A stretch of DNA of 64,000 bases from Mobula hypostoma (taxonomy: Eukaryota), in the NCBI RefSeq assembly GCF_963921235.1, contig NC_086107.1:46872001-46936000 (forward strand), read 5' to 3'. Shown here one piece after another: positions 2,211 to 59,270 of this stretch. The notes beneath the pieces were generated by a model, which ran no database searches, was not told where the DNA came from, and saw only the letters and a program-made list of their open reading frames with translations. The translations under genes were made by a program, and so were the position numbers. The first letter of the stretch is position 1. Each line of letters starts with the position of its first letter.

Positions 2211-2520
2211 AATAGTTCTTCAGTTTATTGGAAGGAATGCATTGTTTAAAATAAAGTTCTAGTAAATTCCTCAGGATTTTAAAACCATAATTAGTTAACA
2301 GTAGATGCCGGTAGTAGAGGCCAGTTGTATTTCCTGTCATCTCGTGAGAGTGCCTATTGTCAAGTGTGTCAGTTGTTAAGCACTTTCATAATAAAAATGT
2401 AGCATAACTTCATGTTGATAGGCAAAAACGGCCTCAATCTAAAATTACTTTCCTGCAGTTGGAAGATAAATTAGAAAATTATTGTCTTACTAATGATAAT
2501 TTTGACCTTAATTATTGCAG

Positions 2521-2877
2521 AAGGTGACTTAACAGTGTCTATGGATACAAAAATTGTGGAAGCCACTGTGAATAAAGATGTTCTTCTTGAATGCCGTGTG
2601 TCTGGTTACAAGGCCACGGAAATTGACCTTAGAACCGTTGCAGTTCAGTGGTTCTTTCAAAAACCTGACTCTTCTGACAGACAAGAAGTATATCATTTCA
2701 CTGGAGGCAGGCATACGCCATACAGAAAAGGAGCTGAAATATTTGACAACGAATTGAAGAAGGGAATTGCTTCTCTTTTTCTTCCACTTGTGCAATTTAA
2801 TGAAGAAGGAGATTACACCTGCACTGTTTCTATTAACTTAGAGAATGGAGAAGGAAAATCTTCCATGACTGTTTCAG
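2521..2877 (+). CDS. NCR3LG1: IgV-domain exon of B7-H6-like gene
   Basis: Acceptor ttgcag|aa, donor tcag|gtaaaa, phase 1-1. V-set motifs LLECRV, VQWF, ASLFLP and EEGDYTC. Confidence 0.93.
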
Positions 2878-5800
2878 GTAAAAATAATAAAGCATGAATT
2901 CTTCCCCTTATACAAACTGTCGAATTACTGCTGCAGCATATTTGATCAAGGAAGGTATTCACCGATATTTATGCGTGTAGTTGCAAGCAGTTTAATGATA
3001 CCCCTATAAATTTAAAATAACAGTCAGTTTTAAAGTTTTGAGGGCTTTATGCATGGTCACATAGCTGGGACGGCATGATGGCATAGCGGTTAGAGCAACA
3101 CTTTGCAGTGTGCCAGCTGTAAGATCAGGGTTCAAATTCCACCACTGTTTGTATGTTCCCCCTAGTTTCCTCCCACATTTCAAAGACTAGGATTAGGATT
3201 AGTGAGTTATAAGCATGCTACGTTGGCAACAGAAATGTGCTGACGCTTGCAGGCTGCCCAGCACAATCCTCGCTGATTTGATTTGATGCAAGTGATGCAT
3301 TTCACTCTATGTTTCAATGTATGTACAAGTGACAAATAAAACTAATCTTTATAATCCTTTAACTAAATCAGCAGTGTTGCACCAATGTGTTGCCATAGTT
3401 GCAATTTTGGAACATTATTAATAAATAACACTGGTGGTGAAATTTATACTATAATATAGTGATGTACAGAGCATCTGCACAAGGTGATGTCCTCTGACTT
3501 TTTTTTGTGCTGACAATTAGAATTCTGTCAACAAGGTACATTTTCAAACAGTGTTTTGCCATTTATTTTACTTGTAAACTTCTTAATATAGTTGCAGATT
3601 ATCTCCAAAATGAGATTTTGGAAATGCTGTTGCAAGATGCTTTCCTAAAATATAAAATGCTTTCTCTACTGCAAATTAAATAAATCTTGTCTTGCTGTAT
3701 CATAATTATATGAATACCTCTATTCATGAGTGTGGAAGGAACAAACCTGTCAATAGATATTGAAATCTGGTGCTGGAGAGTGTCTCGGGTGTACTCTGCT
3801 TTAAGATGATGACCAGCCCAGTGATAAGATGATGTTTAATATTCATGCTCAACTTCATATTACCATTTACATGGTTGGTATTTTGTGCATTAAACTACGG
3901 AATGGCAAAATCACAAGTTTGTGTTCTGGGAGTAAAGACGTGATTAACCTACATCTTTACACTTTAATTATCAGGAAGAGCTATCTTCAACTGTGAAAAT
4001 TTTAACATGTGCGGTAATTGTTTGATTCAATAGATGCAAAAGGTATTTAATATTAAATTATGACTATATTATATCTTTACAGCCAAACCAAATGTGGTAT
4101 TATCTTCAACTGCCATCACAATTGAGAATGGTACTGAAAAGTCAGTAAATTGTAGCAGTACCGGTTTTTATCCCAAGACAATTGAGATGAGCTGGTTAAA
4201 GAAATCTAAAGATGGAGAAGAAAAGATTTTGAAGCATTTCTGCACAGGATCCCCAATTAAAAATAATGATGGAACCTACAGTGTTTCTAGTCGTATGAGG
4301 TTACGGCCATCGCTCCAAGATAATTCTAATGTTTACATATGCTTTGTGAGACACAGATCACTTCGTAATGGTGAAAAGTTGGAAACCACTCTGAGTGTGA
4401 AAGGTAAGTGTTGAGCTTACTTTATGTGCACATTAAGTTTGTAATGGAAAATATAGGCATAAAGTGAAGGCTAACATGTTGTTATGAGACTTTATTACTT
4501 TGTTCATGGGATGTGGACATTAACGATAATGTTGACAAGTTTTGCCCATCCCAATTTGTCCCTGGACTGAGAAGATCATTAAGATTCTACCAGATTGCTA
4601 GATCTGGAATTATGAATAGATAAGCATGGCACATTTCTTTATCCCAAGGATATTTACAAAACATACAAATGCAGTTTCATGCTTCCATTAGCAGCTTTTG
4701 TAATCACAAGGTTTTAACTAGAAATTGAAAGACATTGTTTTGGTATACATGTTTGGAGCACAAAACAATAATAAAAACCTTCAAACTGGAAGCTTATAAC
4801 AAAAAAAACTTGTAAGGTACTAATTGTGGGGGATGTTATTTTTTTAGTAGAGGCCAGACAAACTTAAGATATGAAATTTGGGTGGCTGGGAGGTCAAGGG
4901 TTAAGGGTGAAAAATTCAAGGGGAACATGAGAGGAAACTTCTTCACTTGGCGTGACAGTGTGGAATGAAATGCCACCAAGCACAAGTAGTGCATGCAAGC
5001 TTGATATCACTGTTTAGGAGAAGTTTGGATAGTTACATGGATTGTACGGGTATGGAGGGCTATGGTCCTGGTGTAGGTCAATGAGAGTAGGCATCTTAAA
5101 TGATTCGGCATGGACGAGATGAGAATTAGGGCCTATTTCTGTCCTGTACTTTTTCTATGACGCTGAAACGTAGCTACAGACCAAATTCATCAAATGCATT
5201 TGAGAGAGCTGTCTGAATCATGTCATTTTTGAACTAACTGGGATATTAGTTGTTTTGGTTCTAGCTTTGTGTAGTGAGACATTGCTAATTAATAGACTCA
5301 TATTGAAGGATTCTTTAAAGGATAGTGGACAGGATGTACCAATGGATTGTGATCAAATAATCAGGCATCGTATAATTACATGCACATGATTATGTAAGGC
5401 TGTTTATTAGCTAGTCTGTAGAGAAATCTCCCACTGAGCATATTTTTGTGTGGAGGACTTTGCAAAATTGGCAAGATGGGAGCTAGTTTGCTGCATCTGA
5501 TTTTGATGCCTATATTGATGCTGGGTGGTCCACTTGTTTCATGCTTACAATGTTTTCATATTGTGGTACTTGTTTAGAGGGCACATAAAAAGAGTCAATC
5601 ACTTTGGAGGGTTTGGAAGCTCATATAAGCCAGACCAGGTAATTTCTTCTTGTGAAGAGAATTTATGAATCAAATGGGTTTTGCTAGTTTTGTGCATTTA
5701 TGAAAGTTATTTTGTAGTGTGATTTTAAAAAATATAATATTCTAAAGCTTATGTAAAGTCAAGAAATGCTTAAATTATCAATGGCAAAGGAAGATAAATT

Positions 5801-8800
5801 AATGTTAATGCAATTCTGAAGAATCTCCAACCCAAAATAATCTTCCAACTTTAAGATTAACCATTATTTTTGAATAAATTAAAAAAATATAAATATTCAT
5901 TATTAAAGCTTTTTTTTTAACAGAGCCAGAAGTTGTTGTACCAGGGGGAATAATAGCTGGCAGTGTATTTGCTAGTGTACTGATATGTTCACTGATCATG
6001 ATCATTGGATTTGTGATGTATCTGCGATATTTCAGAAAAGGTAAGATATGCTTCAGTACATCAGAAACATGAATAATTAACTCCTTTTCTGTGTCTCACA
6101 CATTTATTGGAATGCACTCCATTGCCTTAAGTGCATCTTACTGAACAGGTAATTCTTAGCTGATCCCTGGGAAAGCATTTGTTTAAAATGTATTTCTTTG
6201 TGATGAGTCGTCAATTCACCTTCTAGGCCTCATTGCAGTTCACAAGATCACAAGACAAAGGAGTGGAAGTAGGCCATTCGGCCCATCGAGTCTGCTCTGC
6301 CACTCCACCATGAGCTAAACTATTCTTCCAATTAGTTGCAATTTTCGGCTTTTTCCCCATATCCCTTGATACCCTGACTAATTAGATACCTATCAATCTC
6401 CTCCTTAAACACCTTCAATGATCGGGCCTCCACAGCTTTATGTGGCAACGAGTTCCATAAGTCCACGACCCTCTGGCTAAAAAAATTTCTCCTCATCTGT
6501 TGTAAATGGGTACCCTGTAATTCTAAGACTGTGGCCTCTTGTCCTGGACTCACCCACCAAGGGAAACAGCCTTTCCACATCTACTCTGTCCAACCCTTTC
6601 AACATTCGAAATGTTTCTATGAGATCCCCTCTCATTCTTCTACACTCTGATGAATACAGTCGAAGAGCCGACAAACGCTCCTCATATGTTAGCTCCTGCG
6701 TTCCAGGAATCATCCTCGTAAATCATTCCCAGTTACTCCTTCACTATTTGCAGCATTTAGGCATGGAAACCTGATAAGATAGGTATATTTGATTAAGAAT
6801 CTTAAAGTTTAAATTAAATTTGATCTGAAAATAATTTTTACTAGAAAGTAAAATTTAGACTTCTCCATGCTATGAAACACTACATTTGGTATTGTGCATT
6901 AGCCACTTTGTGTTTACTTTAGAATTTTTCAATTTAAAGCTACAAAGTCTATACAACAAATATATGTGAAATAAAAAGGATACATTCCTGGCCCGTTTTC
7001 ATTATTTTACCTTTTAGAAACCAGGTTGACTAAAATCTATTATGTTTTATGCTGTATAGTTAGGTTTATGTGTCACTTTTAAGCTTGTTACCTCCATTGG
7101 CTGTTGATTACACAGTTCTGGAATTTGCTCTCTGAATGTATTTGCCTTCCTTCTTTATGATACTTCTTAAGAGCCATGAATTTGCCCAAGATTTAGCCAC
7201 TATCCATAAAACCACAGAACATAAGAGTAGAATTATGGCCCATCAAGTTTGCTCTGCTATTTTATCATGGCTGATCCATTTCCCTCTCAGCCCCATTGTC
7301 CTGACTTCTCCACGTAACATTTATGCCTTGACTAATTAGGAAACTATCAGCCTGTACCTGAAAACACCAAATAACCTGGCCTCCACAGGCAACTGTGGCA
7401 AGGAATTCCACAGATTTCCCACTCTGGTTAAAGAAATCCCTCCTCATCTCTGTTCTAAACAGACATCCCTCTAATCTGAGGCTGTGTCTTCTGGTCCTAG
7501 ACTCCCCCACCACAAGAAACATCCTCTCCACATCCACTCTATCTAGGCCTTTCAATATTCAATGGATTTCAATTATACCTTTCATACAATAAGCCTGTCA
7601 TTCCCAGAATCAATCTTGTGAACCTCCTCTGAACTCTCTCCAATGTCAGTACATCCTTTCTTAAAATGATACTTCAAGTGGAGACTCATCTGTGCCATGT
7701 TAATTATCAGCATTACATCCTTGCCTTTATACTCTAGTCCTCTCAAGATGAATGCTAACATTGCATTTGCCTTCCTCACCACCAATTCAAACTGCAAATT
7801 AACCTTTAGGGAATCCTGCACAAGGACTCCCAAGTCCCTTTTCACCTTGGATTTTTGAATTTTCTCCCTGTTTAGGAAATAGTCTACTCCTTTATTCCTT
7901 CTACCAAAGTGCATGAGCATACACCTCCCTACACTATATTCCATCTGCCACTTTCTTGCCTATTCTTCCAATCTGTCTAAGTCCATCTGCAGTCTCCCTG
8001 CTTCCTCAGCACTATCTGTCCCTCCACCTATTGTCATATGATCCACAAACTTGGCCACAAAGCATCAATTCCATCTTCCAATCATTAATGTACAACATAG
8101 AAAGAAGCGGTAACAACACCAACACTTGCAGAACACTGCTAATCACCAGCAGCCAATCAAAAAAAAAACTCCCAATTAGCCAGTGCTCTAACCATGTGTT
8201 TCCTCTAATACCTTGGGCTTTTATCTTGATAAGCAGTGTCATGTGTGGCACCTTGTCAAATGCCTTCAGAAAACCCAAGTACACAATATCCACTGATCTT
8301 GCTTTGTTTATCCTATTTATTTCCTCAAAAAGAATTCCTACAGTTTTGTCAGGCAAGATTTTCCCTTAAGAAAACAAGTTAACATTGACCTATTTTATCA
8401 TGTGTCTCAAGGTACCCCGAAACTACATCCTTAACAATCAACTCCAACATGTTCCCAAATACTGAGGTCAGGCTCACTGGCCTATAGTTTCCTTTCTTCT
8501 GCCACTCTCCCTTCTTCAAGAGTGGAGTGACGTTTGCGGTTTTCCAGTCCGCTGGAACTATGCCAAAATCTATTGCTTCATGAAAGATTGTTACTAATGC
8601 CACAATCGTTTAAGCTACTCTTTCAGGACTCTTGGGTGTAGTGCAGCTGGTGCAAGGGACTGAACCACCTTCAGACATTTCAGATTTTCAAGCAGCTTCT
8701 CCCTAGTAATAGCAACTGCGCTCGCTTCTGCCTCCCGATGATCTCAAATTTCTGGCATAGTCTAGTGTCTTCCACAATTAAGACTGATGCAAAATACTTA

Positions 8801-11800: not shown

Positions 11801-14800
11801 CAATGTGGGCTCGATATTTATATGCTAAACGCAAAGGCAATCACTACCTAAAAAGTTATAGGCAATGCATAGACAATGCTTCCTTTTGAGGCTACATACA
11901 AAACATCACACCTTCTGAATTCATCCTTTCCTTCCGACGCTAACATGTCTGGGTTGGTTTCCACAGCCTTTAGGAATGCAAGTTAAATCCATAATACATC
12001 TATTTGTCATTTTATGTGCTAACATAGAAGACAATTAATATTTATAAAGTATAGATAATACTGTCTTCAAAACTACAGCATCTAGTCAAACTACGGCACC
12101 AGAAGCATCTGGTATTCACACCTTTTTTAGGAAGCGCATTGTTGTGGACTCAATCCACAGTACTTTGTCAAATAGAAGTCTGGTGGCCAAAGTCATTTAA
12201 GTGTAAACGAATTATCTACCCAAAAAAACTCACTCTAACAAATATCTTCCAAACTTTTGATCTCACAGGTTTGTCTATATTGTTTGTGCTCAATCCACTA
12301 AAGCATGCCTGTTTGCATGCAATAAATTTGTCTCTATTTTGCTATCTCTCTCCCCTCTTAGAAGCTTGTGCCTTAAGACTTGGCTTGCATCAGCCTGATT
12401 TGTCTGTCAACTGATATTTCTCACACATGACCCGATTATTTTTTTTGTTTGTGTCTATCTTTTCTTGACTCTTGTGGTGTGTTATCTTTCACTGTGCATT
12501 AATAGCCTCTGCATTTCCAGTTCTTCTGTCCTTCTGTCCTGACATTTCTCACTGCTTTGGCTTCATCTTTGTCTCTGATCTACTTGTGGGTCAATATTTA
12601 TATTGCTTTTAAACTTAGAGGTCACCATAATTGGGATAGACTCAATTGTTTCATACTTTTTTATTTAGTGCAGTGTTAAACTATGCATTGTCTGGTGATA
12701 TTTATGTGAGCAGATGTTTGGTGTAGTTGTATGATTATTCTGATAGCTTTAAAGTAACAAAATTGCCTTGCAAAAAAGAATAACTTTTTAAAATATTTTT
12801 CTAGTACCTCCTAAAGTTTCTGATATCAGCCAGCCTCCACGCATTGTACATTTGGAAGAAACTGTTCTGACTTGTCAGATATCTGGATATAAACCTTCAA
12901 ATATTTCTATTCAATGGTTTCTACAAATAAATGGCGGAACAGAACATAGCATTTGCCGGTGGACTTCTCCGTCTGAGAACTTGAAAGCACCTGAGGAGAT
13001 CGATCAGCAGAGACTTATTGCAGATTATGAAAGTGCAGTGGAAGCTTTTGCATTTGAGATGTCAGCTGTCACAAACAACAGTGATGGTACCTCCAGTCTG
13101 AAGTGTGAAGTTATCTTCTGCCCTGATATTGAGAGAGATAATGAAGCTGTTCTTAAACTTCAAGTTTTGCATAGTAGCAATTTGAGAAAGCCTATTATTA
13201 AGACCATCACATTGAAAGTTGAAGGAAGTAAGTAAGAAAGCAATGAAAATAACTGAATATTTGTCATTAGTAAAATTACTTCATTGTAGAATGGTTTCAG
13301 AAGGGCGAAAAATGAAATGATCATGACTGGATCGGTATCTTTGTCCTCTCTTTTTTTGCACTACTTTTGAATTTCACAATGCATAGTATGCCAGTGATAT
13401 TAAACATAATTCTGATTAGAAAATTACAATGAACACATGAAGTTACAAATTTCTCCATCCACTTGTTTATTCTTAACTGTTTTGTAAGCACTGCACTACC
13501 AGTGTTTAATTTCAGAATCAGGCTTATTATCTCTGGCATATTCATGAAATAAAAAGTACTGCAAGTTACAAAATAAACAAATGGAGTGAAAGACGAGTAA
13601 GGAAGTAGTATTCATGAGTTTGTGTTCTATTGAGAAATCTGATGGCGGAGAGAAAGAAGCTGTTCCTAAACCATGGAGCATGGGTCTTCAGATTCCTTTA
13701 CCTGATCCCCGTGATCGTAATGTGAAGAGGTCATGTCCCAGATGGTGAGAGTCCTTAATGATTGATGCTGCCTTTCTGAGGCACTATTCCTTTTGAAGAT
13801 TTCCTCAGCGATGAGGAGGGTTATCCCCGCAAAGAAACTGGCTGGATCTCTTTCGGAGGCATTGGAGGCTCCATGTCAGGTTGTTATGCAACCAGTGAGA
13901 ATGCTCTATACAGTATGTGTAGAAATTTGCAAGTCTTTGGTGGCCTACTGAACCTTCTCAGACTCCTAATGAAGAAGAGTCACTGATATTCCTTCTGTAT
14001 GATTATAACAATGTGTTGGGCCCAAGATAGACCCTCTGACTTGTTGAAACCCAGGACCATGAAGCTGCCCACCCTTTCTACCAGTGACTGTTCAATGAGG
14101 ACCAGTGAGTGTTCCCTCGACTTTCCCTTCCTGAAGGCTGCAATCGGTTCCTTTGTCTTGCTGATGCTTTGTGCAAAGTTGTTGTTGTGACTGCACTCAA
14201 CCAGCCAATTCATCTCACTCATGTACACTTCCTTTTCAACATCTGAGTTTCTGCCCTCAACAGTGATACTAAATTTAGAGATAACATTTGAGCTGTACCT
14301 AGTCACAGTCATAAGTGTAGATGGATTAGAGCAGTAGGCTAAGCACATATAGTTGAGGTATGCCTGTGTTGATTGTCTGCAAGGAGGAAATGCTATTACA
14401 TAGAACATAACAGCACTTGGCAGGCTCTTCAGTCCATCATGTGTTGTGACAATGTTTTAACTTACTCTTAAGATCAATCTAAGCCTTCTCTCATATATAG
14501 CCCTCCATTTTTCTATCATCCATTTTATTACAATATGCACTGACTGGTATCCCAACAAGGACTAGTGTCACCTGATTTGGAGGACAGGTATACTTGGATT
14601 TTGAGAGGCTTTCTATAGGTACTGTACTAAACGAGCAATTATTACATAAAATTACAGCACACACGATTGGAGGCAATGTTTATCTATGAATTGTGAATTA
14701 AGTAATAGAGAGGGGGAAAAAGAGTGCAGGTCATTTTTGGGCTTGGAGGCTCCGACTAGTGCAGTGTCCTAGTGATCAATCCTGGGGCATCAGATGTTTA

Positions 14801-20800: not shown

Positions 20801-23800
20801 AACTTCAGTGGTTGGCATGATGTTAGAATGGATTAGTTTTGTTAGGCATTTGACTATGAAATTTGATTGGCACAAGATTGTGGAGTGAAAGGCATGTTCC
20901 TATTCTGTACTGTTTATGGTTAGTATAGATTTATTTAATTACCTGAGTTTAATTTTCCCTAGTATCATGAAGGGTTTGGACTTGAGTCTTCAGATTTCTC
21001 CAGCTATCTATAATAATTCAGTGATCTATTGAATGTGCTACAAAAGCCCCATCAAACTGTATATCAGTATCCTCTTTTTAATGATTCCATCTAAATCTGG
21101 TTCTTAAACAAAACCTGCAGTTTGTCGCAATCTTTTACAGTTTATTTTTCCCTTTCTTTGCTGCTTAGCAATCCCAAAATGTGATGATATAAAAATCGTT
21201 CCTGAAGTCCCAATTGTAGAAGAATTTGGTTTTGCATCATGTCGAATATATTCCTTCTTCCCAAAAAACATCAAAGTTATCTGGAAAATGGATAATAATA
21301 TAATGGAGGAAATGAATGCTGAATCTGAAGCTATCTTGGGAAAGGATGGCCGTTATAGCTGCACAAGTCATTTGAAATTTATTCCCGAAAGAGAAGATTT
21401 GGGAAAGTTATTGACGTGTGAATTCCAGCATGAAAGTATGACAGACACCAAGAAAACTAGCTGTAAATTGTTTAAATTGAGTGAGTAAATGTTTTATTTA
21501 TTAACACTTTTTATTTTGCAATATTCCAATAGCCATTAGAGAACATAAATGGATACATGCAGGAGCTTTTGTTAAATTATTGTTGGTGGTATGGATAATC
21601 TATCAGGTTCATTCCGATATACGTTCTAGTTTCAGCTTCATGGCTGGTCAAACTGGAAAAGCTAACTTTGGACAGTTTAACATTGGCCACTTGTTATGGG
21701 ACCAGAAAATTATCTTTTCACTCGAAGTTTTTATTTTCACAACTTGAAATCTAGTCAGATATCTCAGTGAGTTTTTTCTTGAAGAAAGCAGAAAGGTATA
21801 TGGATATGGATGCAATCTTTGAGGGTCAAAATCCAATCCCGGGCAGGCTGCTCGGTTGTTGGCTAGAATAAGTTTGATAATTAGATGTTACTGTAGACAC
21901 AAAATTGGAAAAGGTATATGAGGAACTTAACTCTTCAACTTTTAAAGCTACGCCAATTTAAAAAATCACAATTACAGAATAAAGTAAAACTTCTACATGG
22001 TAGAATTGGAGCAATCAGCCCAGTGGCCCTTTGCCATTGGTAACATACCATGTGAGTATCCACACAGACACACTACCACTAAATCTAAAATAGTATATCC
22101 TTCCATTTTTTTCTCCCTCATTTTTATCCAGCTGATCTTTAACCCTATGGATCTATCAGCTTGTTAGGGTGGCTTATAAGTCGATTGACCGTAAATGCAA
22201 TTTTTTTTCTGATTTGTATCCAGTTTCAATAAGACCATGTGAGTTGGGTGAAGACTTGTTTGCTTCTTGAATCTTCCATGCTGGCTTTATTTATAACTTC
22301 CCTGTCTGAAGGTGCATAGTTTTAGGAGTGAATTTTTTTTCTGTGTGATTAGGGAAAGTCACATGATGTCCACTACCTGTATAGAGTGGTATAGTGCATA
22401 ATAATGGTAATCTGCAATGTGGTAAAATGTTATTGCTTCACAAGCACATTGGTTTGTTTGATACAAATTTTAAAAATCTTTAGTTTGCAAAATTTCAGTA
22501 ACCCTTGTAGAACACAAATTAGTTAACTGTTAATTCAATTACTGTTAGTATAATGGGTAACCTATTAGATTGATGCACAGATGCATACTAAGTTCTGGAT
22601 TCACTGCTGGCAAAACTGGAGGATGAATGCTCAGTTTTCTTTGTTGGTTTTATCAAACATGAAATATGTTTAGAATGTGGTTCTGCTGAGAAAATTGAAG
22701 CAGTTAGACTTAGATGTAAATCTATCGGTATTAAATACTTGAGCTGAGTTCTCTATATTATCCTTGATCAAATTGATACAGGTACAAGCAAATAACATAT
22801 TAAATCTATGATTTAAGTTGTATGGGCAGCAAGGGCCTTGATTCATAGGATTTAGCATTCTTTTGAGATTGTTCTGTTGAGACATGGTACACTTAAATTG
22901 AGTGAGCAAGCACTCTACTGACAAATGGGATATATTTATTCTAATTAAAAGAGGAAGTGGGGAAAGGAAATATTTAGCACCGGGAGAAAATTCAAGTCTG
23001 TAAAGCAGAGTGAAAGTGTACGGAGTGATATACAAAGGGACAAGGAGATTGTCAGACGTTATTAGAGTTTTTTAAACGGATCAGAGAAAAAAAAGCTAAG
23101 CTTTGTGATTGAGACATTGATCAGGGCAAAATATGAGAAGAGAGTTAGGATTGAGGTGGACTGAGAAACTACACTGCCACCTTGCTTTATGAGTCAATAC
23201 ATTCTCAAGAATGAGAATACGAGTAGAATAATTATAGTTAAAATGGGTTTGTAGGAATGTATATGGATGTGTTATTGGCAGCTCCATTCTGTGAGACACA
23301 GAGAAAACCCTTGCACCCACTCTTCACACACCCAATTTCAGCTGTGCTTGAAATCTGTTTGAGAAACTAGACTTTTGCAGCAGCATTAAAATAGTTGAAA
23401 TGGTCTCATAGCTACCTGGAGAGAGACACCTAGGGAATGTGCAGCAGCTATATGATTGTCTAGCACTGAATTATGTGGCTTAAGGTTGCATTCTGAATGT
23501 TATGGCCAGTAAGAGACATTGCTGGGGAGAAGGGGCAGCGGCTCTATGTGATGTCATTCTGCACTCTGCACCTTCTGATGGATGTGATGGAGCTGCCATG
23601 TTCCCTATCTCTTGTCTGGCTACAGACTCATCTCAGCCCAAAGGTTTCTCAGTAATGCAAGTCCAATACTTTTTCATGCTGAAATGCTAATCTTGGTAGC
23701 TCAAATTCAAGATAATTGTGACTGTTTTCTTGTATAATTTTGTTTGGGTTATTTAAGTAGGTTGTAAAACCACTTCACTTAACAATTTATTTTGATATTT

Positions 23801-26800
23801 ACAGTATCTTCTCCATTAATGGACAAGATGACAGTTGAACCACAATACCCAGAGCCAGGAAACGAAGCAACATTCCTATGCGTTGCTTATGGCTTCTTTC
23901 CAGAGAATGTCATGTTTATGTGGTTCAAAAATGATAAGAGGATTGATGATAATGAAATAATTTCTACCACCCCAGAGATAGATAAAAATACCGGCTTCTT
24001 CTACAGCGAGAGTCGATATAAATACATAATTTCAGTAAAAGATCGTCAAATTGATTTCAAAGTTGAGGCTCTTCATTTTCCAACTTCTCACAGACCTACA
24101 AGGATTTTTCACACCTTGCACCTTGGAGGTATGAATTCAATGTATTCTTAATTTCTACATTTAAACTGTTTTAGAGAGCTACATATTTCTATAGCTATCA
24201 ACATGTCAAAATTTCACACATTTAATAACACAAAATTGTTACACTGAAATGTGTGTGTTTTTATTAAAAGACTACAAATACACATGTAGTAAATCATGCT
24301 ATACAAACTTTATGGTAAAATTTCCTACTTGTCAGTCAAATTTTGGGAAAGAAATTGCATTTAAACTATTAGAAATTAGAATTTATTAAAAAATTTCTGT
24401 AATTAAGTAAAAACAAAAGAGAGATGCCCTGATCCAGTTGACTGTTTGCTGTTTTGTTTGGAAATAACAACATTCAGTGCACATTGTAAAAATGGAAGGT
24501 GAAGAGTCACTGGCTGATTTGAAGACCACAAGTTTAGCCAGCTGCTGCAGACGCTTTAGAATTATTAATAGGGCCCAGGATGATACCCTGCAGTTATTCT
24601 GGGGATTTGATTTGCTCTTTAACTGCGCCCCAAATGGAATCCAGTGATGTAACTTAGAGGTTACATGGATTCCTTGGCATCTTTCTGGGAAATTGCTTCA
24701 CCTTATTGCTAGATTCCTGTGGTGGAACTCAGTGTTGCTAGGGTTCCCTGGTGCTATTTTGGGGAATAGTTTGCTGCATCACTGATCTCTCCATGGAGTT
24801 TGAATAGAGACTCAAGCCACTGCTTCAGATTCGCTAGCATTATTATACGGGATTGCCACTTGAATCCTGTGTCAGATCCAACCTGCTTCAGCATCTGAGA
24901 TCACATTCTTTTTAAAGTGGGTTAAAGAGCAGGCAAGGAACTTCTATCAATTATTTTCTTTTTATGTTATTGGTTGGCATCCATCTGTTGAAGGAAAAGA
25001 GTGATGACCATCATCACAAGCCTGGACAGAAGATAATGGAGATCCTGAGATGCCCAGTCATCAAGATCCCTCTCTTGGCCTCACCAGTGTAGTCCAAAGG
25101 AAAGCCGATGAAACAATACATTTTGTACAAGTATGGCTGCAGGAGCTGCCGGATGAATGTTCAATATTGTCCAACCACCTTAAGGGCTCCACTCCGGATT
25201 TGCTGTCTGGGTTTACTCCCATAGCCTTTGTCTCTCCTAAGGCTGCCCACAAGGCAATGGGGCTATTTACTTATAGCTGGGGATCTGGTTCACAAGCACC
25301 AAGGCGTGTCTATTTGCTGCTGGGCCTGCGTGCTATGTGTGCAGGGACCAGACCTCCTCCCCATCCTCTGTAGTTCAGCCCGAGTCCAAAAGGAATTCAG
25401 TTTCCATGTGTTTGCAATGAGGAGGCACTGCTTGGGGCTTGCTGTTGGAGAGGCCATGTACTGGCAGGGAGAGATTTACACATTTGGGTATCCTTTTCGC
25501 GAGACTGCGAGCCAGCGGTGGAAGCTGAAAGTAAGAGTGACAAACACTACCACACTAGATGCATCACAACAACCATTTTGACACTATTATTAATTATTAT
25601 CCATTTAAAGCTTTAAACTGTTTTATGTTCATATTCTTGATGTTGTATAATTAAGTTTTTTAAATTAACTCTGGGTGTTAGAAACATTAAAAAGTTTAAG
25701 AAATTTTATGTTTTTACTGCCTGTAAAAATTCTGCCTCCATTTGTGCCTGTGCTAGATGGTTGGGTTACTTTAGATTTGGGACCTGGTACAGTTACCGTT
25801 GCTGCTGGACTATTGGATGTGGAGGTAGATTGGCCTTCTACATCTGGATAAAATAAACAAATGTGTGGGACAAGTTCAAACCATAATTCTGGGTATGAAG
25901 ACTTCTCTGCAATGTCTGGCCCTTTTATATTATTCAAAGAACATTACACAGTGATAAAAATAAGTATGCATCAATGAGGTGAACTGAATTTTGTCATGTG
26001 ACAATACGTTAGATGTTTCAGCTATCTAACCCAAGTTGAATCTCAATATTGAATTGTCCAACTCTAGTTAGCACACACAAAATGGTGGAGGAACTCAGCT
26101 GGACTATTGGATGTACAATATAAAAGGGCCAGATGTAGAAGGCCAATCTACCTCCACATCCAATAGGCCAGGCAGCGTCTATGGAAAAGAGAAAGCAGTC
26201 AATGTTTTGGGACATCAGAACTGGTAAAAAGATGAGAAGTCAGAGCAAGAAGGTGGGGGGAGAGGAGGAGAGGAAGAAGTACAAGGTGATAGGTGAAACC
26301 GGGGGCCGGGGGGGCGGGGTAAAGTAAAGAGTTGGGAAGTTGATTGATTAAAAAATAAATAAAAGGCTGGAGAAGGGGGAATCTGATAGATACTGGAAGA
26401 CCATGGAAGAAAGGCAAAGGGGAGGAGCACAGAGGGAGATGATGAACAGGTAAAGAGACGAGGTGAAAGAGGGAAACGGGATTGGGGAATGGTGAAGGGG
26501 GACAATTAACATAAGTTAGAGAACTCAATGTTCATGCCATCAGGTTGGAGGTTACCCAGACGGAATATAAGATGTTGCTCCTCCAGCCTGAGTGTGATCT
26601 CATTCTGGCAGTAGAGGAGGCCATGGTCTGACATGTAGGTATGGGAATGGGAAGTAGAATTGAAATGGCTGGCCACCAACTTTTGTCAACTTGTTTTTTC
26701 TTTCTGTTTTTATCTGGACTTGCCATTTGTAATTTCAATACTGCTTCATCCTCTCACCCACTCCTTTCCTTTCTTTCATTTTCTTTTCTGGCCTGCTGAG

Positions 26801-29800
26801 CATGAAAGCCAGATGAATCAACAGGACCAAGACTGCAAAATGTTAGCAATGTGTTACACATATATTCATTCAATAGTAATAACATTACACCCCGTTTGTT
26901 CCACCCATTGTCCTTCCTCATCTCCTCTGCTGTTTCAACTAACGTCCACTTTGTTTACTTCTTCGTTCTGTTGAAGGGTTGTCCATCTGCAGCGTTAACC
27001 ATTTTCTCTTTCCGCACATGCTGCTTGACAACTGAGTTCTTCCTGCAGTTCCATTCTTTTCTCAGATTCCAACATTTGCATTTTTATTTGCTTTCCAAAT
27101 ATTTCTTTGGTAAGTGGGAGCCATTTCTTGGTTACCAGCTAATTAAGTAAGTACAATTTAGTAAGACTGAAACACATAGAAAAGCTGTTTTGAAGTGTTT
27201 TTATATATTGTCAGTTGATTAGTTTTAAATTTAGTCAGTTCTTTTGGAAACGGTGTCTGCTTTTTCTTCAAATAGGAATTCCAAAGCTTTCTGATGTCAT
27301 TCTCGAGCCAGAAAATCCATTATATGGCCAGCCTCTTGTTCTTAAATGTAATGTAACCAGTTTTTCTCACAATGAAATTTCCACCCAATGGCTAATGGAT
27401 GAGGAACCCTTCTTAAAAGGAGTAAAAAATTCAAGCCCCATAATGGGAAAGGATGGATCTTATCATTTGTCCTCCTGTCTGGAGTTTATACCAACAGCAT
27501 TGCATTATAATAAGAAATTTGCCATTGTGGTGAAAAATGGACTTTCATCTGATGGTATTAAAAAGCAGTTTCGTTTACCGCTTCCAGGTAAGTTAAACTG
27601 GTGCAAAACCCTATACGTTTATTAATTTTGTTAGCAAGAACTGAATTTGTCAGAGTAAAAAAACCAACTGCTAATTGTTTTTGAATAACATAATTTGTTT
27701 TCATATATTTGTTTCCAGCATGGGCCCAGGTGAGTTTATAAACCTTTACTTGAGTAAAGGTATTAATAGCAGAAAAGAAAGGACTTTGAATTGAAGTACA
27801 ATTGAGTCCAGTTAATTGGGACACATCAGACCTGTACATTTTGGTCCAGTTAAGTGGCTGCCCAATTAGCCTAAGTTTCATGGAAATAGTAAGAGACAAA
27901 CTACCATTTAACTGAATAACAAATTATGTATTTAAATGAAATACAGAACAAATTAGAACACTATCAATACCACTACAGTGCTATAAAACTGTATTAGTTC
28001 CTAGTAGTTCATCCAGTGTACATTGCTGCTTCTTTTGATTGATTATAAATGAACAAAATCAGTGCAGACAATGGGCTGCCTTCATACAATGCTATTGATG
28101 ACTGCAATCACCAAATCTTCATTATCGTTATACGATTGTCAATACCTTCAAACTCTTTTTCTTTCTTAACTTGGTTAAGTGGTGTAATCATTTCATTTTC
28201 ACTCCTAGCTGTTCCTAGTATCTCCAAGCCTGAATACTCGAAACCACAGCAAGCAAAGCGGTTCTGAATCGTCTTACTGCTTGTTTCTCACCAATGATCA
28301 GTGACAAAAATCAGTGCTCTATAAACACAAGCACATTCAACTGATGCTCCTTAAAAACAGCTCACTCCAAGCACAGTGTAACTTCTAATGGTCACACAAG
28401 TGCATGCATTTGACGCCAGTTAGAAACTTCCACAACATTCTCCTGCCCCAAATAAGTGGCGTAGTGCCCCCGAATAAAGGAAGAAGTTCCTGGCTTTTTT
28501 CTTGATGAGTTTTGTTCTTTGAAAGTGTCCAAAATAGTGGGAAGATTTGCAAATGTTGCACAGGGGGGTGGGGGCATGGTTTAAACTAGAGTTGCAGGGT
28601 GCACAGAACAGTTCGTGGAGTGGTTATGAAGAAAAATGTAAATCATATATAACCATATAACAATTACAGCATGGAAACATGCCTTCTCGGCCTTTCTAGT
28701 CCGTGCCAAAAGCCTACTCTCACCTAGTCCCACCGACCTGCACTCAGCCCATAACCTTCCATTCCTTCCCAATTTTACGTTAAATGACAATATCAAGCCT
28801 GCCTCCACCACTTTTACTGGAAGCTCGTTCCACACAGCTACCACTCTCTGAGTAAAGAAGTTTCCCCTCACATTACCCCTAAACTTTTGCCCCCTCTCAA
28901 CTCATGTCCTCTTGTTTGAATCTCCCCTACTCTCAATGGAAAAAGCCTATCCACGTCAACTCTATCCACCCCCCTCAACCTTCTACGCTCCAAAGAATAA
29001 AGACCCAACTTGTTCAACCTTTCTCTGTAATTTAGGTGCTGAAACCCAGGTAACATTATAGTAAATCTTCTCTATACTCTTTCTATTTTGTTGACATCTT
29101 TTCTATAATTCGGTGACCAGAACTGTAGACAGTACTCCAAATTTGGCCTTACCAATGCCTTGTACAATTTTAACATTACATCCCAACTCCTATACTCAAT
29201 GCTCTGATTTATAAAGGCCAGCATATCAAAAGCTTTCTTCACCACCCTATCCACATGAGATTCCATCTTCAGGGAACTATGCACCATTATTACTAGATCA
29301 CTCTGTTCTACTGCATTCTTCAATGCCCTATCATTTACCATGTATGTCCCATTTTGATTAGTCCTCCCAAAATGTAGCACCTCACACTCATCAGTATTAA
29401 ACTCCATTTGCCATCTTTCAGCCCACTATTCTAACTGGCCTAAATTTCTCTGCAAGCTTTGAAAGCCTCCTTCATTATCCACAATGCCACCTATCTTGGT
29501 ATCATCTGCATTCTTACTAATCCAATTTACCACCCCATCAGTCACCGGCCTCCAACCTGACAAGCAGTTATCCACCACTACTCTCTGGCCTCTCCCATCC
29601 TGCCAATGTTGAATCCATTTTACTACTTCAATATTAATACCTAACATTTGAATCTTCCTAACTAACCTTCCATGTGGAACCTTGTCAAAGGCCTTACTGA
29701 AGTCCATATAGATAACATCCACTGCGTTACCCTCGTTAACTTTCCTAGTAACCTCTTCAAAAAATTCAATTTGTCAAACATGACCTTCCACGCACAAATC

Positions 29801-32800: not shown

Positions 32801-35689
32801 TTGGAGGATAGCTAATGTTGTTCCATTGTTTACGAAAGGCTCTATGAATACGCCACAAAATCAGTAGTGGGAATGTTATTGGAAGGTGGTCTAAAGGTCC
32901 AGATATATAAGTATTTGGATAGATAGGGATTGATTAGGGATAGTTAACCTGGCTTTGTGCATGGTAGGTCGTGTCTAACAAATCTTATAGAGTTTTTCGA
33001 GGAACAAGCCAGTAAAGTTGATTAAGGCAAGACAGTGGACGTTGTCCACATGGACTTTAGTGAGGCCTTTGATGAAGTGCTGCATGGGAGGTTGGTCAAG
33101 AAGGCTCAGTCACTTGGCATTCATGATGAGGTAGTAAATGGTTGCTTCTCTGACTGGAAGCCTCTGACTAGTAGTGTGCCACAGGGATTAGTGCTGGGTC
33201 TATTGTTGTTTGTCATCTACATCAATGATCTGTATAATAATGCAGTAAACTGGATCAGCCACTTTGCTGATGACACCATGATTAGGGGGTGTAGTGGACA
33301 GCAAGGAAGACTATCAAAGCATGTAGCAGGATCTGGACCAGCTGGCAAATGGAATGAAAAAAATGGAATGCACCAACCCGGTCTTACATGAAGAGCGGTA
33401 GGGCACTGAAGAGTGTAGTAGAACAGAGGAATCTGGGAATACAGATCCATAAATTCCTGCAAATGGCATCACATTTAGATAGTCTTAAAAGAAAGCTTTT
33501 GGAGCATTGGCCTTCATTAATCAATGTATTGAGTATAGGAATTGGGATATTATGTTGAAATTGTATAAGATGTCAGTGTGAGGTCTAATTTGGAGTATTG
33601 TGTGCAGTTTTGGTCACCTACCTACAGGAAAGATGTAAATAAGATTGGGGGGAACGTCGACTCAGACCATGAGAGGCCTGCGTCAGGCATTTTCATGCCT
33701 TACAAGGTGCAGATTAGAAGTGCGGGGCGCCACTGCTCACACAGACTAGAGCAATGTGTGATTAAGTGCCTTGCTCAAGGGCACAAACACACCACCACAG
33801 CTGAGGCTCGAACTAGCAACCTTGAGAGAACTCCTTGACGAACTCCTTAACCACTTGGCCACCTGCCCAATAAGGTTGAAAGAGTGCAAAGAAAATTTAC
33901 AAGGATACTGCCAACACTTGAGGACCTGAGTTATAGGAGAAGGTTAAATAGGTTAAGACTTTATTCCCGAGAACGTAGAAAATTGAGGGGAGATTTGATA
34001 GACATACAAAATTTATGAGTAGTATTGATAGTGCAAATACAAGCAGGCTTTTTGCAGTGATGTTAGGTGAGACTAGAACTAGTGGTAATTGGCTAAGGGT
34101 GAAAGGTGAAATTTTTAAGGGGAACACAAGGTGAAACTTCTTCACTGAGAGGGTGGTGAGAATGTGGAATGAGCTGTCAGCACAAGTGGTGGATGCGGGT
34201 TCGATTTCAACATTTAAGAGAAATTTGGATAGGTATGTGGATGGGAGAGGAATGGAGGGTTATGGTCCAGGTGCAGGTCGATGGGACTAAGCAGATCAAT
34301 GGATCAGCATGGTCTAGATGAGCCGAAGGGCCTGGTTCTATGCTGTAGTGTTCTGTGGCTCTGTGATTCTAAGTGGCTGCTCCGATTATCCGATAACTCA
34401 ATAAACCAAGTCCACTTTTACATCCATGTTAAAAGCTGAGCATGTGACTGAATCAGTGTCATATTTCACTTAATTTTTCAACATTTCAAATTTTGAACCT
34501 TCCAACATACGAATTAGATGGGACGTTATTGTAGCCTTGAGAACAAAGTACACCTTAGCAATTTTAGGACTTTTAAAAAAAAATTATGGGACCATTTTTA
34601 AACCTATCTGATTTACTAATGGGCTTGGAGGTGGAAGAGTGCTATTTTGGCAAACCTGGCTTATACACACTCCAGAACCAAAGCAATATGTTAACTCTTA
34701 GCTGCCTTTTATAAATCCTCATCTATGAGATTACTGGGTATAATAGGATCAAATATTCCGTTTGAGGATTGGAGTTTGTTCAATTACCCACATTTACTCC
34801 TCTCAGTAAATGTATGATGTCATTGGAAACAAGGGTCCAGATGTCATATTTAGAATCACTAATAAGAGTTGCTCAAGGCATCTCAATACTACATTGTAAA
34901 AGTTATGTTTCTTAACACTTGTTATTGGCTATTCATCAGAAATACAACCAACCTCGTTTCCCATGTAAACTGTTAACATCTTTTCCAACTGCTCAGTAAT
35001 TCATGCTTTTATGTGCCCATCCTGAAAGTGTATAATTTTTTATTAAACTCTAGAAAATATCTTTACCGAATAAATTTTGTTGTTTCCACTTTCTACTCCT
35101 ATATTCCTTCCTGATTAAGGATTTATGTAGGCCTGCTGACATTTATTTAGCCTACAAACGGTGCCGTTTTGAATGTTTACTTGGATATATGTGATATATC
35201 ATTTTCTCAGATGCTTTAATCTATAGCGGTCTTGTCTACTGTATAAGCTTTAGTATTTGAAATTTCTACATTCAACATATTTATCTTAACTTTGGAAAAT
35301 TTATTTGTCAGAATTTGAACAATCAGCTCTAGTCAATGGGACTGACTATATTTGCATGTTGTGTTCCACTTTAAGGACATTTCCCCACTGTGTCTGAAAT
35401 CAAGTGCAACCCAACACATCTGGAGGAAAACAGAATGGCTACTTTCACAGTTTCACTGACCAATTATGTACCACTGGAAATTGAAGTGAAGTGGTTCAAA
35501 GGAGAACAACCCTTCACAGGACCTGTGAATAATAGTCAACCTCAGATTACTGCAAGTGGTCTTTTTTCTTCAACAACCAGCATAGAATTTGCTCCAGAAC
35601 GATCTGATCAGGACTTGGAAGTCAGATGTACGATATTTCACTCAGAGACAAGCAAAAGAATAGAACAAAAGTTTCATTTAACATTTTGA
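2521..35689 (+). CDS. NCR3LG1: B7-H6/NCR3LG1-like multi-exon gene (V-C1-TM plus six C1-type Ig domains); leader exon upstream of window
   Basis: Nine exons with AG/GT boundaries, all phase 1, join into one open frame (2858 nt including stop). V and C1 resemble human B7-H6 as recalled from memory: DLTVSM vs DLKVEM; GFYPKTIEMSW vs GFYPEAINITW; TGSPIKNNDGTYSVSSRMRL...YICFVRHRSL vs [20 protein letters not shown]...YQCVVRHASL. Linkage of the post-TM exons to the TM exon is inferred from phase and strand. Confidence 0.8.
3067..3355 (+). mobile_element. tRNA-derived SINE
   Basis: A-box-like TGGCATAGCGG and B-box-like GGTTCAAATTCC, with an AATAAA/TAATC-type tail. Confidence 0.7.
4083..4403 (+). CDS. 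NCR3LG1: extracellular IgC1 exon of B7-H6-like gene
   Basis: Acceptor tttacag|cc, donor aaag|gtaagt, phase 1-1. C1 motifs VNCSSTGFYPKTIEMSW, DGTYSVSS and YICFVRH; N-glycosylation sequons NGT and NCS. Confidence 0.93.
4878..5165 (+). mobile_element. CR1 LINE 3' end
   Basis: Matches the CR1 ORF2 C-terminus (GNMRGNFFT...VWNE) and 3' UTR seen elsewhere in the window. Confidence 0.7.
5924..6040 (+). CDS. NCR3LG1: transmembrane exon of B7-H6-like gene
   Basis: Acceptor ttttttaacag|ag, donor aaag|gtaaga, 117 nt, phase 1-1. Encodes EPEVVVPGG-IIAGSVFASVLICSLIMIIGFVMYL-RYFRK: a hydrophobic helix followed by a basic stop-transfer. Confidence 0.9.
6240..6730 (-). mobile_element. CR1 LINE 3' fragment
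   Basis: ORFs 6332-6580 and 6477-6713 give RRMRGDLIETFRMLKGLDRVD and FFSQRVVDLWNSLP; (cacaagat) tail. Confidence 0.85.
7205..9700 (-). mobile_element. degenerate CR1 LINE (APE-RT, fragmented)
   Basis: Fragmented ORFs with AFDKVPH, GNYRPVSLTS and ADWKTANVTPL motifs. Confidence 0.85.
10393..11490 (-). mobile_element. ERV/LTR-retroelement gag-like ORF, truncated at the first zinc knuckle
   Basis: Uninterrupted 365-codon frame with likely Met at 11292. Gag-like HKPFTPGEKQSIFSELP and acidic/basic helical segments, ending at VCFACRQ. Lies directly downstream of a PBS and LTR on the same strand. Confidence 0.7.
11648..11665 (-). promoter_or_regulatory. primer binding site complementary to tRNA-Leu
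   Basis: Minus strand TGGTGTCAGGAGTAGGAT, 17/18 match to the complement of the vertebrate tRNA-Leu(CAG) 3' end as recalled (ATCCCACTCCTGACACCA); 2 nt from the LTR end. Confidence 0.8.
11668..12120 (-). mobile_element. 5' LTR of the ERV-like element
   Basis: Minus strand ends in CA next to the PBS and carries a TATA-like motif (~11820) and AATAAA (~11730). The distal TG boundary near 12120 is tentative. Confidence 0.65.
12805..13227 (+). CDS. post-TM C1-type Ig exon 1 (141 aa, with loop insertion)
   Basis: Acceptor tttttctag|ta, donor gga a|gtaagt, phase 1-1. LTCQISGYKPSNISIQWF and NNSDGTSS present; the F-strand Cys is replaced (VLKLQVLH). Confidence 0.85.
13605..14400 (-). mobile_element. 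Rex1/Babar-like LINE 3' fragment
   Basis: ORF 13980-14408 resembles the RT C-terminal region (ISKTKE..FRK...VERVGSFMVLG). Confidence 0.65.
14992..16258 (-). mobile_element. L1-clade LINE 3' fragment
   Basis: zf-RVT-like QCDRCKTEIATLTHMFWSC and LLARRAILLKWK...EKI motifs; A-rich tail. Confidence 0.8.
15272..15487. repeat. palindromic (hairpin) short interspersed repeat inserted in the L1
   Basis: Near-perfect inverted arms at ~15277-15354 and ~15371-15443; flanking duplication GAGCTATAC(A/G)CCATA at 15265-15279 and 15488-15502. Confidence 0.8.
17751..18130. mobile_element. mariner-type MITE
   Basis: Terminal TACGAGGGGTGATTGATAAGTT and inverse AACTTATCAATCACCCCACATA, TA ends; internal extra TIR-like copy near 17913. 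Confidence 0.8.
18489..18866 (+). CDS. post-TM C1-type Ig exon 2 (126 aa)
   Basis: Acceptor (T)nCCTTCTCAATAAAAAAAG|tt, donor aaag|gtacag, phase 1-1. LSCPIDGFKPRPLAITWY and EYICEAEH, both Cys kept. Confidence 0.85.
19780..20930 (+). mobile_element. degenerate CR1 LINE fragments
   Basis: KVDKSPGPDGI, VAHVVPLFKKG and related RT motifs. Confidence 0.75.
21169..21480 (+). CDS. post-TM C1-type Ig exon 3 (104 aa)
   Basis: Acceptor ctgcttag|ca, donor ttg a|gtgagt, phase 1-1. ASCRIYSFFPKNIKVIW, DGRYSCTSHLKFIP and LTCEFQH, both Cys kept. Confidence 0.88.
23805..24128 (+). CDS. post-TM C1-type Ig exon 4 (108 aa)
   Basis: Acceptor tttacag|ta, donor gga g|gtatga, phase 1-1. FLCVAYGFFPENVMFMWFKN present; the F-strand Cys is replaced (FKVEALH). 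Confidence 0.88.
24960..25590 (-). mobile_element. internally deleted RTE-like LINE
   Basis: RTE-like 3' end (...CAGATGGATGCCAACCAA on the minus strand) joined to degenerate endonuclease-like sequence. Confidence 0.5.
26070..26660 (+). mobile_element. Penelope-associated interspersed repeat (CACACACAAAATG..GGAGGAACTCAGC family)
   Basis: Same head motif recurs at ~40095 and ~43060; purine-rich body. Confidence 0.55.
27276..27587 (+). CDS. post-TM C1-type Ig exon 5 (104 aa)
   Basis: Acceptor cttcaaatag|ga, donor ccag|gtaagt, phase 1-1. LKCNVTSFSHNEISTQW and DGSYHLSSCLEFIP present; the F-strand Cys is replaced (FAIVVK). Confidence 0.88.
27799..28540. mobile_element. Tigger-like non-autonomous element, truncated
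   Basis: Starts TACAATTGAGTCCAGTTAATTGGGACAC, with internal CCCAATTA/CCCAAATAA subterminal repeats. Confidence 0.5.
28635..31375 (-). mobile_element. CR1 LINE ORF2 (APE+RT), degenerate
   Basis: ORF fragments from YFNARSIVKKVNEL/AISETWL through DFSKAFDKVPH and NADDTKIGG to RGNFFTQRVV; (AACCATAT) tail. Confidence 0.9.
31412..34365 (+). mobile_element. CR1 LINE ORF2, degenerate, head-to-head with the previous copy
   Basis: From TATTTCAATGCAAGGAGT through DKSPGP, VPQGLVLG and HFADDT to the 3' UTR. Confidence 0.85.
33648..33870 (-). mobile_element. tRNA-type SINE inserted in CR1
   Basis: Interrupts CR1 between AAGATTG and AATAAGGTTGAAAGAG; minus strand starts GGGCAGGTGGCCAAGTGGTTAAGG (A-box-like). 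Confidence 0.6.
35376..35689 (+). CDS. terminal post-TM C1-type Ig exon 6 (with stop)
   Basis: Acceptor ccactttaag|ga, phase 1. The B-strand Cys is replaced (ATFTVSL); EVKWFKG, GLFSSTTSIEFAP and VRCTIFH present. TGA at 35687-35689. Confidence 0.85.
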
Positions 35690-35888
35690 GGTAAATGTGA
35701 TTTTGTTCCACTTGTTGCCTCCAAGGATCAAGTCCAACTTCTAAAATAGCTCCCCAAACAACAGTACATCAGTGGCATATACAGGCCATTTGGGACAAAG
35801 ATGTCTCAAGGCCCTTCATAAGTGTGTTAGCAAATTAAATTTTAACCAAAGCCCATTATGAGATGCAAGGACAGATGACCATAAATTG

Positions 35889-35894
35889 AATAAA
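35889..35894 (+). terminator. candidate polyadenylation signal
   Basis: AATAAA 200 nt after the stop; the AT-rich background makes a chance match plausible. Confidence 0.35.
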
Positions 35895-36141
35895 AGTGAT
35901 GGTTTTAATAGACATTTTGAAAAATGGAGAAGAGTAACAAAAATGTAAAAACTGAATTCCAGACTGAGAAGCAGTTGGTAGCCAATGTAGATTTTGAATA
36001 TTAATAGTATTATTATTGAAAGAATACCAGGAGTTCAGAGTGGGGGAACAGAACTGAAGGTGGTAGTGCTATATAATAGGAAGTGAATTTGGAGGATTTG
36101 ATTATTAAACATGAGAATGGCTGTTTGGAAGATTGTTTGAT

Positions 36142-56654: not shown

Positions 56655-57176
56655 GGCAGAGAAACAACTCCTTATCATACATATGGTAAGGTGGATTCTT
56701 TCAGATTCAGTACAAAATTTATCACTGATTAAGCTGACAACCTAGGTTTGTGATTTGTGATTTATCATGGAGATAGATGCAAATGTAATTGTGTGCCTAT
56801 GGGTATCAGCTACCAGTTGATTCTGGGTAGTTTGGTATCACTGGTATTGGTACACGGCTAGTCACCACTTAGGAAGTGCATACCTCTTCATCAGTCAGTC
56901 ACAACTGAGGATGAATATCTGTATTAATGTGCAGTGGGTGATGTACCAAAGGAGACATTTATTCTCTTCAGAGAACCTCATGACAGGATGCTTGTTGTTT
57001 GGGGAAAGTTGTTTCTCCAGGGATCTATCTAAATCTCTTGCTCTCTCTATTGGTGAAAAGATCAGAATCAGGATAGATGTTTTCGGTAATGTCTGTCTCT
57101 TTCTCTACAGAGAGGGGTCAGAGATGTACAGGAAAACTAAATCTATCTTTGTCTTAGGAAGGATGTTCTCTCTATC

Positions 57177-59124: not shown

Positions 59125-59197
59125 ATGGGCCGGACGGGGAGTTCATTGTGGATCGTGTCGGCGGTGATCGCGCTGATGGTCCTGGTGCCGCTTTCAG
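59125..59197 (+). CDS. first (signal-peptide) exon of a second gene, possibly a B7-H6-like paralog
   Basis: MGRTGSSLWIVSAVIALMVLVPLS plus 1 nt (73 nt, phase 1); donor tcag|gtgaaa; n/h/c signal-peptide pattern. Confidence 0.75.
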
Positions 59198-59270
59198 GTG
59201 AAAACCGGATTGCGCTGGGGGGGTGGGGGGAGTGCCGAAGGAAGAGAGATGACTGGCAGGCCAGGCTAGG

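Follow-up and report, generated by a model that had tools for sequence, protein, structure and literature searches.

The stretch of Mobula hypostoma DNA analysed here, 64 kb in length and hereafter called the window, holds a gene whose nine plus strand exons join into 951 codons without a stop. All nine exons are bordered by an AG acceptor and a GT donor, have a length divisible by 3 and meet their neighbours at phase 1 junctions, and the reading frame terminates at TGA 35687-35689. The encoded domains come in the order V, C1, transmembrane (TM) segment, then six more C1-set domains, Pfam having assigned exon 1 to the V-set and the remaining seven immunoglobulin (Ig) exons to the C1-set. An earlier reading of the DNA letters (the original prediction) had described a V, a C1, a single TM exon ending in RYFRK and six C1 exons, and each of these features was found where it had been placed. 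The phase 1, stop-free junctions claimed at the same time are borne out by the uninterrupted 951-codon frame.

The first domain of the ectodomain is encoded by the V-set exon (2521..2877, plus strand; Pfam V-set, E value 1e-9), which was free of mismatches in spliced RNA contigs of 4 runs and identical to the RefSeq protein described below. The second domain, a C1-set exon in which the canonical Cys pair is kept (4083..4403, plus strand; Pfam C1-set, E value 4e-13), is attached to it by the joint 2877>4083, with GT..AG borders, in 4 runs. A connecting peptide and the single TM helix, with its basic end RYFRK, are found at 5924..6040 (plus strand; Kyte-Doolittle 19-mer value 2.68), joined by 4403>5924 in 4 runs. 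This TM exon is 117 nt long and in phase 1-1, so that the frame survives its skipping, and its joint with the first tail exon translates as RYFRK-V-PPKVSDI.

The six tail exons, all on the plus strand, sum to 2064 nt and encode a tail of ~690 aa. Tail domain 1 (Ig3, 12805..13227) starts with VPPKVSDI and contains a long insert; it was recognised by Pfam as C1-set, all its sampled words were present in RNA runs X1-X4, and a Leu stands in place of its second canonical Cys. Tail domains 2 (Ig4, 18489..18866) and 3 (Ig5, 21169..21480; Pfam C1-set, E value 4e-11) both have an invariant canonical Cys pair. In tail domains 4 (Ig6, 23805..24128) and 5 (Ig7, 27276..27587) the alignment of cysteines places Val and Ile/Phe, respectively, at the second canonical position, and in tail domain 6 (Ig8, 35376..35690, including the stop codon) the first canonical Cys is a Val. 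Ig4 to Ig8 were each recognised by Pfam and are present in a skate mRNA. Both strands of the window were also searched with an HMM made from these six tail exons and the C1 exon of the ectodomain, and no further Ig exon was found.

The model is identical over 951 of 951 residues to XP_062918061.1 (LOC134353706, Mobula hypostoma, “uncharacterized protein”, 984 aa). The RefSeq protein has in addition a 33-residue signal peptide, MQESKEAMACARKLSPRLVPRVVALLALLRLSE, which is not encoded within the window. A scan for ORFs and donors, together with a tblastn search with the RefSeq leader, gave no leader exon in 1-2520, and the ORF and donor scan gave no leader-like exon between the TM exon and 12805 either; the leader exon thus lies outside the window. 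With the leader scan empty and a single helix in the hydropathy profile, the absence of a second TM segment or leader among the exons, as originally predicted, was confirmed. An in-frame ATG (MIILTLIIAEG..) was noticed at 2493-2520, upstream of the V-exon acceptor and within the polypyrimidine tract; as RNA contigs splice at 2521, the main transcript does not use this ATG. For M. birostris, RefSeq has an isoform model of 945 aa that lacks the leader and begins with a Met inside the V domain.

The V-C1-TM-(C1)n layout is shared by two RefSeq neighbours, LOC134353705 and LOC134353704, and the locus therefore contains at least three tandem paralogues. Nine C1 domains follow the TM segment in LOC134353705. 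In one tandem paralogue, the nine post-TM domains include five near-identical 110-aa repeats, which points to a recent exon duplication in its tail.

Other features of the window were recorded as well. Within the intron separating the TM exon from Ig3, region 6250-8450 is covered by RNA contigs to a depth in the thousands, with many short divergent contigs; LINE/RT-like ORF fragments on its minus strand mark it as transcribed repeats, outside the gene. A 365-aa ORF on the minus strand (10393-11490), also in a long intron, is possibly a retroelement remnant. Pfam gave no matches for the intron ORFs (10396-11490 on the minus strand and others). Further downstream, within 57141-59400, a Pro/Ser/Leu-rich stretch of low complexity is broken by masked runs of N (57527-57951 and 58466-58709) and gives way to a tandem repeat of the AEPSR type at ~59270-59400.

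RNA contigs from four Mobula hypostoma runs were placed on positions 2450-8449 of the window. A single long contig was obtained per run (2416, 3232, 3170 and 3301 nt), with 0 mismatches over V, C1 and TM and with both the 2877>4083 and 4403>5924 introns removed at GT..AG borders. Depth was zero in the non-repeat intron bins, which means that the contigs come from RNA and not from DNA; the remaining intron bins contained only short, divergent repeat contigs. Past position 6040, the long contigs extend for 1519, 2313, 2313 and 2311 nt, no piece of which falls in 6041-8449, and word shares indicate that the first tail exon is complete in all four runs. The letters of these contigs were read as far as the TM exon, and their link to Ig3-Ig8 relies on length, word shares, the RefSeq model and the skate transcript. 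Once the 2064 nt of tail exons are subtracted from an extension of 2313 nt, ~249 nt are left for UTR.

The skate transcript is Logan contig L001 (SRR5172151), of 3517 nt, which contains an uninterrupted ORF of 958 aa and is colinear with all nine exons of the window, at a DNA identity of 69-79%. In this alignment the TM block reaches 6043 and is immediately followed by the block beginning at 12803, and the blocks run on to 35690. Four further Logan contigs of the same cluster have ORFs of 944-958 aa. We conclude that there is one gene and one mRNA, in which the TM exon directly precedes the six C1 exons. Among the outcomes that, according to the original prediction, would speak against it are a TM exon that never splices onward and a separate downstream gene with its own promoter and leader. 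Instead, the Mobula contigs run ~2.3 kb further than the TM exon, the skate TM segment abuts Ig3, and no leader exon is present between 6041 and 12805. Since the model equals the RefSeq protein residue for residue and fits the spliced RNA contigs, this gene structure is not due to chance.

Could the predictors nevertheless have wrongly fused two neighbouring genes (a short one of B7-H6 type and a C1-array gene lacking a leader), or decaying duplicated exons? Some multi-TM matches of the family search reported below do look like fused Ig heavy-chain models, with an IgM-type motif. Here, however, spliced RNA contigs include the TM exon and go on for over 2 kb of additional sequence, the skate mRNA carries the whole ORF, the intervening intron lacks a leader exon, and the tail has the signature of purifying selection and domain-by-domain orthology across more than 400 My. 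We regard a fusion of this kind as extremely improbable.

The 3′ end was less straightforward. The stop codon lies one base before a GT donor (35691). A 3′ UTR read through from the last exon and ending near the AATAAA at 35889 was considered and rejected, as only a share of 0.19 of the words sampled from 35600-35960 was present in the RNA runs, exactly the part of this region that is exonic. The donor at 35691 is thus apparently used, with the 3′ UTR in a further exon; this exon was sought but not located.

A different reading of the transcripts is that the TM exon is skipped in the main product, giving a secreted protein of eight Ig domains (V-C1-C1x6), the TM form being minor or membrane-tethered. 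The symmetric 117-nt phase 1-1 exon would permit this without loss of frame, the Cys pairs of Ig4 and Ig5 are invariant, and related extracellular multi-C1 proteins exist (UrIg, UrIg2, and matches with a C-terminal TM). Against it, the TM exon was included through 4403>5924 in 4 of 4 Mobula runs, and no joint leading from C1 to Ig3 was present among the joints listed, which leave aside 33 further ones. The skate contig and five Logan ORFs (944-958 aa) also include the TM exon, and every homologue has conserved it together with the juxtamembrane motif; even with some skipping, the TM form would still be made. Contigs lose rare variants, and a minor, secreted isoform skipping the TM exon could have been missed. 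As the main product, the secreted form appears to us quite unlikely, and we retain the TM-containing protein as the principal one.

We then turn to the ectodomain. B7-H6 (NCR3LG1) is the ligand of NKp30, and its human form has a short, non-Ig, Gag-related tail. When residues 26-262 of the sawfish orthologue were compared to the PDB with phmmer, human B7-H6 chains came out best (6yjp, 3pv6 and 4zso, E values of 6e-32 to ~1e-31), followed by CD276 (B7-H3, 6e-20) and tapasin-related protein (2e-14). The Mobula protein was also modelled with AlphaFold2 from an alignment of 32 sequences (mean pLDDT 84), and Foldseek aligned the V-C1 part of the model with B7-H6 (6yjp, 4zso, 3pv6) at a TM-score of 0.90-0.92 and an rmsd of 2.0-2.7 Å, with 30% identity. 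The ectodomain had been called B7-H6-like from the start, and B7-H6 is indeed its best match both by PDB sequence (E value 6e-32) and by fold. The ray protein shares with human B7-H6 the signal peptide, the V-C1 ectodomain, the single TM segment and the type I layout, but its tail consists of six C1-like Ig domains, where that of human B7-H6 is short and Gag-related. The suggested kinship with the B7-H6 lineage is one of ectodomain similarity.

A nurse-shark protein of the same layout (QTT61906.1, 1092 aa) has been deposited under the name “natural killer cell cytotoxicity receptor 3 ligand (B7H6)”. Its identity to the window protein is only 37%, which suggests a sister lineage, and hence at least two old long-form lineages in cartilaginous fish. 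In that sister lineage (nurse-shark B7H6 and Callorhinchus LOC103174895), the frame does not end at the site of this stop codon of the window gene but goes on to encode an acidic linker and an additional Ig domain.

The distribution of the layout was examined by phmmer, using tail exon 21169-21480 as query against a database of 1.8 billion representatives. The search returned 433 matches, and an internal TM segment followed by at least 2 C1 domains was present in 136 of the 215 proteins fetched. A second search, seeded with the best of these matches, and a cluster look-up led to XP_062918061.1. Species named with this layout are Callorhinchus, many sharks and rays, Latimeria, Protopterus, Erpetoichthys, Acipenser, a newt (Lissotriton) and several frogs; no amniote was among the named matches, the search not being amniote-specific. 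Homologues are annotated “uncharacterized” in more than 30 species. The size of the post-TM array varies, with six, seven to nine, or more than 10 domains, the tails of more than ten domains being those of frogs. The window gene has the hallmark of the family, an array starting with K-VPPKV after the TM exon on a single mRNA. Judging from these sequences, the conserved arrangement is ancient, extending from chimaeras to newts.

Some matches depart from this scheme. Three frog proteins (P0003, P0005 and P0013) have a V-C1-C1 ectodomain, a TM segment, an array of 7-13 C1 domains and, at the end, a long acidic region rich in Ser; their different ectodomain indicates that the post-TM C1 array is not restricted to B7-H6-like ectodomains. 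Matches with two TM segments (P0073, P0090 and similar) might have been taken for a variant of the family, but the membrane motif of Ig heavy chains is present in their TM segments; they look like fused heavy-chain models and were set aside. An Atlas search with the tail gave only generic C1-set clusters.

Is the tail maintained as a functional part of the protein? Compared domain by domain between Mobula and other species, its identity is as high as that of the ectodomain. Ig4 is the tail domain best conserved at long range, being 40-46% identical to its bony-vertebrate homologues, while the values for V are 31-38%. Against the skate mRNA, dN/dS was 0.20 for the ectodomain, 0.34 for the tail and 0.22-0.47 for single tail domains, values that are rough as dS is near saturation. 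At about 0.34, the tail is under purifying selection.

In the AlphaFold2 model, the six tail domains are beta-sandwiches with a pLDDT of about 88-94, and only the juxtamembrane linker and the Ig3 insert are modelled with low confidence. The best Foldseek match of the whole model was a titin fragment (I65-I70), while by sequence the closest solved relatives of the tail domains are Ig constant, SIRP and UrIg2 domains. The ~690-aa Ig array of the original prediction is therefore modelled as well folded, and its dN/dS is that of a constrained sequence. By these models and rates, the tail is a maintained, folded module.

On which side of the membrane would this module lie? Each of 18 proteins compared has one strong hydrophobic helix, with a Kyte-Doolittle value of 2.2-3.1, the maximum in the tail being at most 1.74. 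In Mobula, the helix of the TM exon is the only segment above 1.9 and corresponds to the AlphaFold2 helix 278-295. In the 18 proteins the TM helix is followed by a conserved basic cluster (3-4 basic residues) and a KVPPKVS motif, and neither another hydrophobic segment nor a GPI-like end was found in the proteins compared. A type I membrane protein is the prediction that these sequence features yield.

The cysteine pattern differs on the two sides of the helix. In all 16 species compared, which range from chimaera to newt, the V and first C1 domains keep the canonical Cys pair. In Ig3, Ig6, Ig7 and Ig8, one of the two canonical Cys is changed to a hydrophobic residue in all 16 species, with the single exception of the newt Ig7, which has a Cys at the F-strand site and retains the pair. 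This hydrophobic replacement across species suggests that four tail domains have been without the canonical disulfide since the gnathostome ancestor. Ig4 and Ig5 have both canonical Cys in 16/16 species, as expected of oxidised extracellular Ig domains, and this casts some doubt on a cytosolic tail; cytosolic Ig domains of the titin type, though, likewise keep buried cysteines. Acidic, Ser-rich stretches of low complexity follow the array in the chimaera and frog homologues, and these look cytosolic. N-glycosylation sequons were dropped as a marker of topology, as they occur at chance level in ectodomain and tail alike.

Taken together, the signal peptide, the single TM helix, the positive-inside cluster and the lack of a disulfide pair in four of the tail domains make it quite probable that the tail is cytosolic. 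Of the original claim that the array sits on the cytoplasmic side, the parts concerning the single TM helix, the basic cluster and the signal peptide have held; the side itself we infer from them.

The polypeptide could also be as modelled and yet have its post-TM array in the lumen or outside the cell, as a membrane-proximal stalk, through an unstable stop-transfer, cleavage or re-translocation. Such a location would agree with the invariant Cys pairs of Ig4 and Ig5, with the nature of the nearest solved relatives of the tail (Ig constant, SIRP and UrIg2 domains) and with the fact that C1-set domains are otherwise not known from anywhere but outside the cell. It is hard to reconcile with a strong helix (Kyte-Doolittle 2.2-3.1) that has 3-4 basic residues behind it in every species, with the absence of a second hydrophobic segment or GPI-like end, or with the acidic, phospho-type linkers of the homologues. 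Moreover, 4 of the 6 tail domains have lacked a disulfide pair since the gnathostome ancestor (newt Ig7 aside), whereas the ectodomains keep theirs. We consider an extracellular tail unlikely, and proceed with the cytosolic one.

The region, then, is one expressed and conserved gene, which we place in the B7-H6 (NCR3LG1) lineage, on an old branch that is still uncharacterised. To this explanation as a whole, including the outward V-C1 part and the cytosolic array proposed below, we give a probability of roughly 0.7.

Three known systems are useful for comparison. Butyrophilins (for example BTN3A1) combine a B7-related V-C ectodomain, a TM segment and an intracellular B30.2 beta-sandwich. The window protein would resemble them in joining a B7-family ectodomain, by way of one TM helix, to a large intracellular module of folded beta-sandwiches, but this module is a C1-like Ig array instead of B30.2/SPRY. 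No SPRY (B30.2) domain was detected by Pfam in the tail, where only C1-set and other Ig families were matched; the protein is therefore butyrophilin-like at most in its working, and not a member of that family. Titin, obscurin and myomesin have tandem I-set arrays as soluble sarcomeric proteins in the reducing cytosol. The predicted likeness is that of a rod of tandem Ig-fold domains in the cytosol; the difference is that the domains of these proteins are I-set and soluble, while those of the window gene are C1-set and attached to a membrane ligand.

The third system, and the closest multi-C1 gene so far described in elasmobranchs, is shark UrIg2, a non-rearranging gene that encodes a VJ domain and 9-11 C1 domains followed by a C-terminal TM, and whose long, plastic arrays of C1 exons grow by exon duplication (PMC12227049). 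Long C1 arrays are common to both, and there is a weak sequence match to the window tail (9dmx, E value 1.5e-8). In UrIg2, however, all Ig domains precede the TM, are extracellular and have each a canonical disulfide, whereas the window gene differs from both UrIg and UrIg2 in that the TM comes after the second domain and is followed by six C1 domains, four of which lack the pair. In the PDB search, the window-type ectodomain also matched B7-H6 far better than UrIg2.

As to function, the V-C1 part would face outward, presumably as a ligand for receptors of the NKp30 type, with the six-domain array in the cytosol forming a folded rod ~25 nm long. The Ig array may act there as an intracellular docking or sensing module, coupling the internal state of the cell to the display or clustering of the V-C1 ligand. 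It may tie the ligand to the cortical cytoskeleton, or else to the tails of the tandem paralogues, given that C1 domains typically pair. The original prediction had suggested a scaffold or a platform for reverse signalling. Our best guess, by analogy, is an inside-out or scaffold role like that of the butyrophilin intracellular domain. The variable number of domains and the near-identical repeats would fit a spacer or scaffold role.

A wider proposal follows, to which we give slightly less than even odds: ancestral B7-H6-type ligands of jawed vertebrates would have had a cytosolic rod of C1-set domains, serving as sensor or scaffold for the display of an NK-receptor ligand, with four of its domains disulfide-free for more than 400 My. 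The sequences themselves are already in RefSeq, and one relative bears the name B7H6, but we found no paper describing the post-TM Ig tail. Nor did the literature yield a description of Ig domains after the TM of any B7-family protein; an earlier one may exist.

If the proposal is true, C1-set domains would for the first time be known to act within the cell; those known so far, the hallmark modules of antibodies, T-cell receptors, MHC and their partners, are all extracellular. The use of the C1 fold would be extended, and the B7-H6/NKp30 axis would gain an ancestral intracellular half. The non-homologous tail of human B7-H6, a retroviral Gag remnant, would then be explained as a replacement.
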